64,000 bases of DNA from Aplysia californica (Eukaryota): assembly GCF_000002075.1 (NCBI RefSeq), contig NW_004797741.1, positions 500,827-564,826 on the forward strand, read 5' to 3'. Positions 50,301 to 57,911 of this stretch are shown piece by piece (position 1 is the first letter of the stretch; the number at the start of each line of letters is the position of its first letter). Both the position numbers and the translations under genes were made by a program. A model generated the notes under the pieces. That model made no database searches and was not told the origin of the DNA. It worked only from the letters and a program-made list of their open reading frames with translations.

Positions 50301-53300
50301 ATCTGAGACTCGTAGAACGTGCGCTTTTCACTCAGACTCTTGATGGTGGCCCGGAGACGCATCAGCTCTTGCTTGCGGTTATTTCTGTAGCGACGCTGGT
50401 TGCGAATGTCCTGAGGAGTAGACAAGACAACAAACAAGCATGAGTGCTGCTGACTTTACAGAGCCACCCGTAACAAAAACTATTACTAATTAGAAATCAA
50501 AATCACATACCGTTTCATAATGAAATACAACTAACAGTCCAAGGACACACTCAACAGTCTAAACATGAGACGAGTGACATTTCCGTCTAGCATGATCCTT
50601 TCAAGCTAACATAACACAGTCATAGCACAATTGACAAAGTCATTTATTTCAGGTGTCTAGGTATCGGTACGTTAAAAATGCCAGCTCCTTGTTTCCTTTC
50701 CACAACATAGCAGGGTTTTGTTTTCTTTATTAAAAATCAAATTATTGAGATCACTTTCACTCATCCTCAGGTATTAAGGTCGACTAACTGTCTTTTCAAA
50801 GTTTTCAGCTGGCAACAAAACATGACTTAGGCAACTGTGCTGTGACCATGACAATAAAAAGCACCTTACACTAGTCTACCCTTCAACGACACACACCACA
50901 AAAACAAAAAAAAGATACTGTAAACACCTATATTTCCAGAAGCTCAGGTGCGGTTTGCTCCTTCTATCCCTATACCACACTGCTATTGTCCTAATCTATT
51001 CCTCGCAAAATATGGTCATCATCTTGCTGGCTCACCATAACTACAACTCAAAATTATTATATCAAAAGCCACAGGAATAGACTACACATACCTGCACAAT
51101 GGAGTTGAGCAACGCCTGATATTTGTTTTGTTTGCTCACCATCCCGGCCAACTCCAGGCTTTGGAGGTTGGCTTTCACCTTGGTTTTCATCACCTCAATT
51201 GGCAACCTGTTTCAAGTAAAGAGAAACACATTGCTGCAAGAACGGCTATTTGGTGCAGGGAAAAAGTAAGAAAAATAAATTAAATCAATAGAGGAAGAAG
51301 AAAGATGGAGAGCCTAACAGAGGTGCCCACTAACCACCCACTCGGCAACCCTTAGCAACAATGTTGGAGACAAAGTTTCAGCCCTTTCCAACCTCAAACA
51401 TTTTTATTTTACCAACACAAGAGTCAGACCCATGGCCTCCTTCCAACTTACAAAGCTAAAATGTACCAATCAGGATTGAAATAAGCAAACTTTACAGCAG
51501 GTCAGAACTAGAACACGGCACATGTTTTTTGCCCCCAAATAATAATTTTTATACAACACACAGGTTAAAGCTTATCTACAAATATTCTCCAGGTTTGCAT
51601 GAAATGAGAAGAGTGCTGTACACTCTAAAATAAATCATAAAACACTGAATGCCATCATAGTTTTTTCATAGCAAACTCATTTTTCTTATCTACACATACC
51701 TTAAAAATCCATTAAAATGTCCAGTTCAGAATGCAACTCATTCGAGCGGCTGAACTGGCTGATCGACAACTGACCACCACTGACCTGGTATCCCCTAAGA
51801 TGGAGGCGTGTCTGACAAGCTTCTGGCCCTTGTCCTTCTGCGTCTGTGTGGCCTTCTTGTCGATGAGGTCCCGCTTCTTGACCAGCGCCTGATGCAGCTC
51901 CTCCTGCTGCTGGTTGCACGGAGCGTCCAGCACCAGCACCAGGTTGTCCCCCGGCTGGCAGGCGATCACGTCAACGATCATACGCTTTGTCCTACAGGGT
52001 GGATAAGATAGAGATATGACATCAATGATCATACGCTTTGTCCTACAGGGTGGATAAGATAGAGATATGACATCAATGATCATACGCTTTGTCCTACAGG
52101 GTGGATAAGATAGAGATATGACATCAATGATCATACGCTTTGTCCTACAGGGTGGATAAGATAGAGATATGACATCTACGATCATACGCTTTGTCCTACA
52201 GGGTGGATAAGATAGAGATATGACATCTACGATCATACGCTTTGTCCTACAGGGTGGATAAGATAGAGATATGACATCTACGATCATACGCTTTGTCCTA
52301 CAGGGTGGATAAGATAGAGATATGACATCTACGATCATACGCTTTGTCCTACAGGGTGGATAAGATAGAGATATGACATCTACGATCATACGCTTTGTCC
52401 TACAGGGTGGATAAGATAGAGATATGACATCTACGATCATACGCTTTGTCCTACAGGGTGGATAAGATAGAGATATGACATCTACGATCATACGCTTTGT
52501 CCTACAGGGTGGATAAGATAGAGATATGACATCTACGATCATACGCTTTGTCCTACAGCGTGGATAAGATAGAGATATGACATCTACGATCATACGCTTT
52601 GTCCTACAGGGTGGATAAGATAGAGATATGACATCTACGATCATACGCTTTGTCCTACAGAGTTGAGTAGATAAGTAAGAGATACACGTCAACAATCATA
52701 CGCTTTATTCTACAGGGTTGAGTAGATATGGAAGAGATATCACATGAACGGTCATACACTTTTAGTTTTAGTAGAGGTTTTACGGCTCTCACAACTGCAT
52801 AACATCATATGAGCGCCAGAAGACAAGAGGTGTTACAAGAGAGTAACAAATATAAAAAAGAAGAAGGGGAGATAAGGAAGATAGATTTTTCATAGGAGAG
52901 AAGAAGCAAACCACACCAGAGCACCCGCCAACCTCCCACTCATACACTTTGTCCTACAGAGTAGATAAGGAAGAGATATCAAGTCAACGATCATAAGCTT
53001 TGTCCTACAGGGAAGATAAGGAAGAGAAATCCATTCAACGGCAATTATCATATCTTTTGTCCTACAGACATAAGAAACAGAACAAATAAGGAAGTGATAC
53101 CTCATCAGCATTATAATAATACACTTTGTCCTTCAGAATAGGGAAGAGATACTGCAGTAATGTTAACAATCATACGCTTTATCCTTCAGAATAAGTAAAG
53201 AAGACCAGATGTCAGTCAAAGTTGTAGTCCCCTGATATTCAGGCTCCTTGAGAGGCAGGACCTAGAGATGAAGGAATGCCACATCTAAACTGAAATGAGC

Positions 53301-56300
53301 TTAAGAGAACTACACCGACTCGACTCGAAAACGATCATTTGGCATTGGGGAAAAGACAAGGCACAGAGGTCCAACGAGAGATAGAAAAGAACTAGGGCTT
53401 TCCAGGATCACACTCAAACCACCACCTATTGCATTAGCCCATCTATAAGTAGGGCCTATAAAATATTCAATGAACGACACTCAAAAAGCATGAATTAACC
53501 CCTTGAGCCCTGCCCCACACTGAGTAGAACTTGCCTGTCTTCTCAATAATTTAAATTGAGACAATGGGCGGAAAACATAGGTTATGAGAAAGAAAAAAAA
53601 CAACCCAAAAGCTTTCTAGAAGAACCAGAACAACAGGGCAGCTTTAGCTGTCAACACACTCAGTCCTAAAAAGCGTTCAGGAAGGAAATTCGTAAAAACA
53701 CCTCTAAATCATATATGATAAACAGATGCACTCCAGACAGCTGACGAGTCCCACCTTATAAGCAAAGACTTCATATCTGCTTTGTCATCTGTGTGAACTT
53801 CAAACTTGCTGGACAGCGTCAGAGAGATTTCCGTTTTCGCCATCTGCGAGCGCAGTGCGTCGTTAGCAGCTTCATCACCCGTGAGTTCTGTACCCAGCAG
53901 CTCGTCGATGGTCGGGGCCTCGCCCAGTTCCTCCAGCAGTTCATGGAGGGGATCGCCACCCTCGGGCGCAATTGTGTCTTGATGTTTGAGCAGAAGCTGG
54001 ACACACATAGAAACAGGTTTTTCAAAAAAGTTTTACTAAGTTTTTTTAACGGCACTTGCAACACAATTAGGTCATACAAGTGCCGAAGATTAGAGGCGTT
54101 GCAAGAGAGTAACAAACATAAAAAAGGAGAGATAAGGACCATAGATGTTTGATATGAAAGAAGGAGGAAACCACACCAGAGCACCCGCCAACCCCCCGCA
54201 ACACAGGAATGGGGGAAATTTGACAGAGTTTGACTGAAAGAGAAGCACATTAGTACAATACCAGTCACTGAAAATTGGGGGGGGGGAATAAGACGGACGG
54301 ACGGACAGAAACAACAGAATGAGCAAATCACAGTAATATCATGACACTACAAGGCTGCACACAGAGATTTTCCCAACTAGAACTGAAAAGCACACATTTT
54401 GCTACAGTTCTGCAATACAGTTGTAAAATGAAAACTTCATTGCTACCCAAGTCGGCAGTGACAAGCCTGACCTTGATACCTTATATTTTGCTTCGAGTTT
54501 TTGAGTTATAGTTACATCATACGTTTTATAGCGCTATTGACACAATATGGTACCTGATGTGTATCCACAATCTCCCCCACAGAGATGTACACGACTGGCT
54601 TGGCAATCATGGTGACATCACTGTACTGATCCACATTAAACCGAGCTTCTGGCTCCTCAACATCACACGCTGACAGGCAGTACTTCCTGCGGGGCGAAAA
54701 TATTCACAACTCACATCCGGATCCGATAGAAAATAAATTCAGATGTCTTTTACAAAATGTACAACATGTAGGAACATCACCATTGAAAAAAAGATGAATA
54801 GTTGAAGGAAGAAAAAAAAAAGAGATAAATCTTACAATTTAAATAAAAAATTACCCACATGATTAGGAGACAGATACTAATATTTGCAGTTATAACTCAG
54901 CATGCTGTATTTTCAGATTTCTTAAAAACTTAGTATTCTAGTTATTTGTTAGGCTCTTAGTTACAACTTCACTTTAGAGAGCATGAAGGAAAGAAAAGTC
55001 AAAACCTTTTTACCCCTTACTGCAAGCTCGTACATGGAAGATCTACCCTCCATCTCTGTGTTTACATTGGCAACAAACTGAGAAAGAATTCATAAAATCA
55101 AACTAAAAAAGCTAGCTCAGTATTCTGCCGGAGTTATTTTCATTAGTACTTACAGAACAAATCTATGATGAAATTATATGAATGTCACAAACTCTTACTT
55201 GAATTTTTCATGGGCGTTTCTGATGTAGTCATTCATGCTGGCCAAGTACGCACTCTCTCCCCCAAACTGAGAAAAAGTCAACAAAATTAAGACATTTTAA
55301 TCGCTCACAACACACAGAAACTATTGATACTCTTTCCTTTCGAAGACAACAACTGTAAATTTCAATGACATCAGTTTGACTTGATTTTGGCTAGAATGTC
55401 TTATGACAAAATTTATTCACAGGAAAGAAATGTACAATGGTCAGGAAAAGCAAACAGCATGAGCAGAAAAGCTTTTCTTTCTGCTGTACTGATGGACTGA
55501 TTTTAAAAAATTGAACTAACAACACTCTGTTGATCTCTAAATTTACAGAGAACTGCTGTTTTCCTTCACGGAATGAATGAATGATCATTGCTTATTGGAC
55601 TTGTCCACCACTACACATATAAAATAAGGAGAAAACAGACATCAGTGCTTGAAAATCCTGATATATCCAAATCAACTATGACAAGCCACAGCAGCATTTG
55701 CGTGTACGTGTCTACATATATACGTATATAGAAACATACATACAAACTTCATACCCAAAAATGCCCACACTGCCACACCCACACAAATTAAAAATTTTAG
55801 TTTTTCTTTCCATTGCGTAAGATCTCATTATCTCTGTTTACAGAATTTAAACTAAATGAACTCTATGATAGCGCTATAGACTTTCAAACTACAAAAACAA
55901 GACAACAAACAAGAGAAAGTAAAGTGTAAAAGTCACATCCATTGAAAATGTTAACACCATTCATTCTCGTTCTGCAGACAGCAACTACTCCAAATAATTA
56001 ACTTTTTTTTTAAAAGACAGGAATTTCTCATTACAAAGACGCTTACTCACCCCTTTGTTAGAAGCTGCAAACTGTAATATTTTGGCGATGGAGCCCAGGT
56101 TACGCCTCTGGTCACTGCTGAGAGCTTTCTCCGCCCCGACGTTGATGATGTCAAAAGCATCAGGGGCCACAATGGCCGAGTTGATGTAGCGGTAGTACAG
56201 CAGGTTGCCAACAATCTGTGAACAGATTTGTTTCAGTTTAACTTTATTTTTGTTTTTTTCCCTTCCTTGTGGGGCACTGAATCTAACCACCTTCAACTTT

Positions 56301-57911
56301 AAAAACTCGGAAGGCAATTTCAAAGATACACTGTACACTGGTCTACTTGTAAAATAAACCAACAACATCAATTTAGATTGATATCTATGTATCTTTCAAG
56401 TACAGGCTTTGATGCATTGATGTCCCTTCCACACAAACATATCACAAAGATCACAGAATCACCACAACTCAAAATATCTGTGTAAATCCTACAACCTGGC
56501 ACCTGCCATTCCGACTTAAACTTGGTAGATCCAAATAATAACTTTCCACTTATTTGTCGCACATGACATTTTTTTGCTACGTTAACTTCTAGTACATCTA
56601 TAATGATTCCCTACTTTTTTTTCTCAAATGGCTATTTTATAGATTGCAGTATGATGCATGCCCGCTCATTTAAAGGTAAACAATATTTTCCACCATCTTA
56701 TTACCTATTTTGAGTTCTAACATTGTGAGAATGGTAATTTGTATTTTCAGAAGAAAAAAAAAGGTCTTTCATGGGCATCAGCAAATAAACTAAAAGGCTG
56801 AAACGAAAGTCCCACTTAGGAACCGAACTTAAAAAGCTTTCAAATTCTTTCAAAATCCAACAACTTCATACTGCTGTGATGTCAATGATAAAACTGTTGC
56901 TAAAATTAAGAAAAAATACAGAACAGCCACCTTTAAAACATCTTTTTCTGGTGCATCTGGGAACTTCTTCAACAGGCACTCCCTCATTACTTTGGCCATG
57001 TAACGCATCCCGTACCTGATGGAACAAATGAGAAAATATTCTTTAATTTTGTAGACTAGCCAGATCCACAGTACCTCCAAACATGTAATAGAAAAAGGAC
57101 AGTGTCTCCCTAACACAGAAAAGGTACAGTACAAATTTATCAATAAGACTTTTACAGACTTGTCTTTCTAAACCACATGCATAGAGTTCTTTCTTTTTTA
57201 AAGTAAGTTCTTTGAGTCATATGTGCTGAAAATCATTCACTAATAACTGAAAGACCTTTTCTCGCTAGGCACAATGGCCAACATTTAAAAAAGAAAAAGC
57301 AGCATTCACTAAACAGTTTTATTTGAGAAAACACCAAGCTTATTTTGTCATCACCTCCAATGTGACAAATAAAGTCCCGTTATATCAGATATATAGAATA
57401 CAAATTGTAGAAACATATTCAGCGTCAACCTTTCAACGACAGCAGCACTCCTGTAACATTTTCTACAAATTCAATACTCATTTTGACTACTCTGAAGCTA
57501 CAGATAGTGAACTCACGGGATGCTGTCTAAAGAAGAGAGGATCTTGTTGAGGAAACGATCTGTGACTCCCTGCAGTCGCTTGATAGTTTCTTCTATCTGT
57601 GTACGGACTTCTTCATGTTTAAGGGCTTGTTCCGTTGACACATCATATGGCAGACCGCTGCAACAGCAAGAATAGGAAGCAAGGGTCAACACACACTTTT
57701 ATTCACAAATTCAGATCTCTAAGAATAGACAAGACACATACAAAACAGGAAGTACTATTGGTTAAAAGAAAGGTACACAATTGCTGGAATTTGTAGGTTT
57801 GTTCGTTTCAAGGCTGAAGTGTTTACTTCTAATGTAAAACAGACCACTCAGAAGACCTAGTGTACTTTTTTCTCTGCGTTATTTAATGAGGGAGGGAGGG
57901 AGGGAGGGAGG

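Follow-up and report, generated by a model that had tools for sequence, protein, structure and literature searches.

One intron of the IQGAP1 gene of Aplysia californica ends in a tandem array of 3' splice sites, many of which keep the reading frame. This locus raises the question of which acceptor is joined to the upstream exon, and whether the array changes the length of the protein. The window analysed here is the whole 64-kb stretch (64,000 nt) around the array, taken from an assembly of 927 Mb in 4332 contigs. Its minus strand carries the 3' half of IQGAP1, with exons that match RefSeq XP_012941932.1. CH, IQ, RasGAP and RasGAP_C domains were all detected by Pfam in the host protein, as expected for the IQGAP family.

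The array lies between two coding exons on the minus strand. The upstream exon (53755-53996, 242 nt, 100% match to XP_012941932.1) ends in phase 2 at a GT donor at 53754. The downstream exon (51785-51991, 207 nt) begins at acceptor 51991, the site used in the RefSeq models, and the intron between donor 53755 and this acceptor spans 1763 nt. The first-pass annotation had located the array in IQGAP between the RasGAP (GRD) and RasGAP_C domains. Pfam agreed, as the splice junction falls at residue 1389, between RasGAP (residues 1026-1238) and RasGAP_C (residues 1464-1591).

Structure of the acceptor array

TRF detected a repeat with a period of 51 nt, 14.5 copies and 96% matches at 51974-52718. 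Sequence inspection bore out the earlier description of its unit as an acceptor fused to the start of the exon: 24 nt of pyrimidine tract and TAG are joined to ~27 nt of exon start. Among the genome matches found, this 51-nt unit is confined to the IQGAP1 locus. On the minus strand, 14 AG acceptors follow one another at 51-nt spacing (52654, 52603 ... 52042, 51991). TRF and a frame check of every AG upheld the claim that all 14 are in frame without a stop: the frame is open from donor 53755 to each of them through exon 51991-51785, and these 14 are the only AGs of the intron for which this holds.

The units had also been called near-identical, which fits the 96% matches, but they are not all alike and fall into a GTAG and a CATTG type. 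Ten homogeneous 51-nt GTAG-type units occupy 52145-52654 (minus strand; TRF and sequence inspection), one of which differs from the other nine by a single tract change. In these units, the exon-derived YTRAY branch-like motif was lost and an AG was gained 33 nt ahead of the next acceptor. The three exon-proximal 51-nt CATTG-type units (51992-52144, minus strand; putative branch point placed from consensus alone) kept YTRAY with the A at -31, and the interval from -45 to -3 is free of AG before 52093, 52042 and 51991. Furthermore, the 48 nt upstream of 52093 and 52042 are identical to those of the true acceptor, with differences starting at exon position 17. By consensus inspection rather than branch-point mapping, a well-placed branch-like motif precedes 4 of the 14 acceptors (52654, 52093, 52042 and 51991).

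The array had been delimited at 51964-52670. It is indeed present there, but it continues 5' with six more degenerate copies, to 53183. This old part (52655-53207, minus strand) is irregularly spaced and contains acceptor copies at 53183, 53130, 53061, 53004, 52953 and 52709, all six of which run into stop codons if used. The acceptor total is ~20, 14 in frame and six unproductive. One old unit contains a ~180-nt SINE-like high-copy repeat (52761-52940, minus strand) that is flanked by an 11-nt target-site duplication and is 93-94% identical to its best copies elsewhere. Since this repeat interrupts one of the old copies, the old part of the array would predate the insertion. The SINE-like family gave 19 blast hits in the window, including 52761-52940 and 54045-54193, and reached enormous depth in the RNA-like runs.

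The main mRNA appears to use the last acceptor

The first-pass annotation had left three options: a ladder of isoforms, constitutive inclusion of the repeat, or selection of the last copy only. Assembled contigs from four runs were aligned to 52604-56400, a region that includes the exons upstream of the array and a single repeat unit. Such contigs lose rare variants, and RNA was informative in a single run, X16, for which the library is not on record and which behaves as RNA. No exon contigs from X4 and X5 were found on the stretch (filtered or absent), which makes these runs uninformative on splicing. Contig joints and loose ends were swamped by the SINE-like repeat.

A 785-nt X16 contig with a depth of 104 covers exons 54685-54554 and 53996-53754 and then runs on for another 380 nt without a match to the first unit; these would correspond to the normal downstream exons. 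Both unit types are identical to the offered unit at 49-50 of 51 positions, and the match cut-off was 88%. The true exon 51991-51785 has no more than 18 exact bases in common with the unit and would therefore not align to it. Had the depth-104 contig entered either unit type, a mean of at least 42 would be expected in the bin over the unit. The observed mean was 7.2, indicating that the dominant transcript skips the array. Some repeat sequence is present in the RNA-like runs, and the repeat depth of X16 reaches at most ~18, a level that 13 collapsed units can produce if each has the single-copy intron background of 3-8.

Annotation pointed the same way. None of the four RefSeq IQGAP isoforms contains the insert, although the same annotation, which draws on homology in addition to reads, resolves a 6-nt microexon. 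The doubled motif was absent from all homologs compared. A protein search with the repeat peptide, covering proteins of 65-208 aa, gave 114 candidates and none at E<=10. Transcripts using several acceptors were seen neither in the dominant X16 contig nor in RefSeq or the protein search. Thus, the main mRNA appears to be spliced to acceptor 51991, the last one. Among the three options, selection of the last copy is favored, whereas constitutive inclusion and a major ladder are contradicted by the X16 contig, its depth and the four RefSeq isoforms.

Boundary duplications in gastropod IQGAP genes

IQGAP introns were mapped in eight gastropods (Aplysia, Elysia, Physella, Candidula, Lymnaea, Bulinus, Batillaria and Patella). 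The position and phase of the array-bearing intron are common to all eight, and intron gain by duplication was rejected on this ground. Adjacent copies of a splice site were found at 26 of the 572 sites in these orthologs (4.5%). A crude null model suggested that arrays are enriched at splice sites (22 observed vs 8 expected), a result overturned by a shifted-boundary control, in which the boundary itself had a rate of 4.5%, compared with 4.6% and 4.2% at shifts of 40 and 120 nt, respectively, and 2-3% at other positions. Because the rate at the boundary equals that measured 40 nt into the intron, boundary arrays do not form a targeted class and are the outcome of dense minisatellite birth.

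About a quarter of the IQGAP introns of Physella acuta contain splice-site copies. Two of them are largely built of acceptor copies, of which 124 and 127 have an AG (L010:16460-24430 and L010:46790-52456, respectively), and a third holds 282 donor copies. None of the seven other acceptor arrays inspected, including two with more than 120 AG copies, gave an open in-frame product. Therefore, gastropods must tolerate long stacks of unproductive acceptors, the last of which is used according to the annotated proteins.

Spacing was a multiple of three in 8 of the 26 events, and in 3 of 12 among acceptors, as expected by chance. The open frame of the Aplysia array is not improbable either: its chance is ~0.23, the product of a period divisible by 3 (1 in 3) and the absence of a stop (0.68 by simulation). 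Since comparable gastropod arrays have a random frame, the in-frame state looks accidental. The 26 events, with their random frames, gave no sign of a design in which selection preserves the frame or which relatives share. The proposal that allelic copy number would alter protein length found no support in these observations.

Recurrence at the same exon

The ortholog of acceptor 51991 is also duplicated in Elysia, with a spacing of 163/153 nt (L009:68951-70106), and in Bulinus, with a spacing of 56 nt (L021:32368-33495); neither set of copies is open in frame. Furthermore, the donor of the exon orthologous to 51991-51785 is duplicated in Elysia, Lymnaea and Bulinus. Because the units differ between species, the sequences suggest that the duplications in Elysia, Bulinus and Aplysia have separate origins. 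Ten species pairs share a duplicated site vs 3.1 expected (permutation p ~0.001), a post hoc comparison within one gene that ignores relatedness and intron length and serves as a lead only. Exon 51991-51785 is a possible hotspot of boundary duplication.

A minisatellite probably seeded across the intron-exon boundary

We favor, with a probability of roughly 80%, a neutral intronic minisatellite that was seeded across the intron-exon boundary and is removed with the intron, the exon-proximal acceptor being chosen. As the composition of the unit shows, a short boundary-crossing duplication copied the pyrimidine tract, the AG and ~27 nt of exon, presumably through slippage or unequal exchange. 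The unit was re-amplified beside the exon, probably later, and the older, decayed copies and the SINE-like insertion were left further upstream. Donor 53755 would be joined to the last acceptor, 51991, as in the dominant product of one run and in RefSeq. Since splicing goes to 51991, the array would leave with the intron and IQGAP would keep its normal length.

Exon definition is the likely chooser among the acceptors: only the last AG precedes a full 207-nt exon and its donor, and with any AG further upstream the exon would be 258-870 nt long and built of repeat. Ten of the decoys may be weakened further because the GTAG-type units have lost the branch-like motif. Masking of the decoys by RNA structure was considered and rejected, as the predicted unpaired probability of tract and AG (~0.5-0.66) was the same for the true site and the decoys.

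If the array is a silent intronic repeat, the IQGAP protein is unchanged and the value of the locus is that of a natural experiment on 3' splice site choice. With ~20 acceptors in Aplysia and over 120 in each of two introns of Physella, of which the last is apparently used, these stacks speak against a simple rule by which the first acceptor wins and argue for exon definition in gastropods. Moreover, RNA-seq could measure acceptor fidelity directly in Aplysia, because mis-splicing in frame is not hidden by nonsense-mediated decay.

Could the array still contribute to the protein?

It is unlikely that the array is leaky, with the last acceptor dominant and the nearest two or three copies used in 1-15% of transcripts. 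Products from these near copies would be in frame and open, and would escape nonsense-mediated decay as IQGAP with 17, 34 or 51 additional residues. Acceptors 52093 and 52042 have the same tract and branch-like motif as the true site, and the X16 repeat depth permits up to ~0.17 unit per transcript. However, this depth is fully covered by the background of 3-8 per single copy over 13 units, no such isoform is found in RefSeq, and the in-frame pseudo-sites of the human F7 VNTR are unused (PMC1557585). We also considered breakage of a helix as an argument against a ladder, as the junction lies in a predicted helix (90-111 of the model). This argument proved weak, because every unit brings back ten native residues; an insertion would effectively come after the predicted helix ends instead of splitting it. 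For the same reason, a short ladder is compatible with the structure taken by itself. Quite unlikely, too, is the broader proposal that low-rate use of the CATTG-type units creates an allele-dependent short ladder at an exon that is a recurrent duplication hotspot in slugs and snails.

A regulated or constitutive ladder with up to 13 extra units is very improbable. The sequence does offer 13 open in-frame alternatives, but the dominant X16 contig is free of units, comparable arrays have random frames, and the homologs are without inserts, with invariant flanking residues (T101 and K102 in alignment A1).

An assembly artefact is a hardly credible source of all or most of the array. The best-matching runs contain only 70% of its sampled words and the extra depth in DNA run X1 suggests fewer than 13 copies, but the ordered unit variants, the decayed upstream copies and an insertion with its target-site duplication are unlike a collapse or expansion error, and X1 provides an independent haplotype in which the first unit is joined to unique DNA and has extra depth. 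X1 represents another haplotype, with many single-base differences from the reference, and one of its contigs joins unique sequence to the first unit. The extra depth on this unit amounts to ~4 copies' worth vs 13 in the reference, a rough figure, as contig depth is not copy number. The array is probably real tandem DNA, the copy number of which may differ between animals or be misassembled.

Comparison with known boundary repeats

We compared the Aplysia array with human repeats at splice boundaries. In CBS c.844_845ins68, the duplication takes in the last 52 nt of the intron and the first 16 nt of the exon and creates two acceptors; the downstream one is strongly favored, with a normal mRNA (PMC7490669, PMC2630376). 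In both CBS and Aplysia, the acceptor and the first exon bases were duplicated and the exon-proximal copy is favored. CBS has one extra copy, whereas Aplysia has 19, amplified as a minisatellite, 13 of them in frame.

The 37-bp VNTR of human F7 intron 7 has a terminal unit that spans the exon-intron boundary and presents five to nine identical donors, of which the exon-proximal site alone is used while the in-frame pseudo-sites remain silent (PMC1557585). Like F7, Aplysia has a boundary-spanning minisatellite and a main product from the exon-proximal site. The F7 repeat lies on the donor side and was tested by mutagenesis, whereas the Aplysia array lies on the acceptor side and was read from sequence and contigs. 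As in the F7 and CBS cases, the Aplysia unit holds a splice site together with exon bases, and the exon-proximal copy is the one in the main mRNA (one run). The Aplysia array is most likely silent and acts like CBS 844ins68 and the F7 intron-7 VNTR.

A polymorphic 31-bp VNTR of human CBS, c.1444_1467+7(16_21), has a unit that includes exon end and intron start, as given by its notation (PMC2630376). This repeat is on the donor side, in contrast to the acceptor-side array of Aplysia. By the title of a 2001 study by Lievers, the CBS 31-bp VNTR reportedly affects enzyme activity.

Expansion of minisatellites near or across splice sites can change exon structure or splicing, as described for internal tandem repeats (De Grassi and Ciccarelli 2009, PMC2812944) and for splicing-associated tandem repeats (PMC10078293). 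In those cases the product is changed, whereas no change of product was seen in Aplysia. The literature searched held no paper on gastropod splice-acceptor arrays of this kind, which is no proof of absence.

Other features of the window

A second minisatellite, at 7202-7917, has a 42-nt unit in 17 copies with 98% matches and long repetitive open frames on both strands; inspection revealed no obvious link to a splice site. RefSeq IQGAP residues 1154-1203 aligned to 57029-56886 (minus strand) with only 66% in one stretch (tblastn), which probably reflects a short exon overrun by the alignment. Finally, a 6-nt microexon of IQGAP1 with AG and GT ends at 62067-62062 (minus strand) fully explains why RefSeq isoforms X1/X3 and X2/X4 differ by 2 residues, and the IQGAP proteins of Haliotis and Gigantopelta carry other short inserts at this position.
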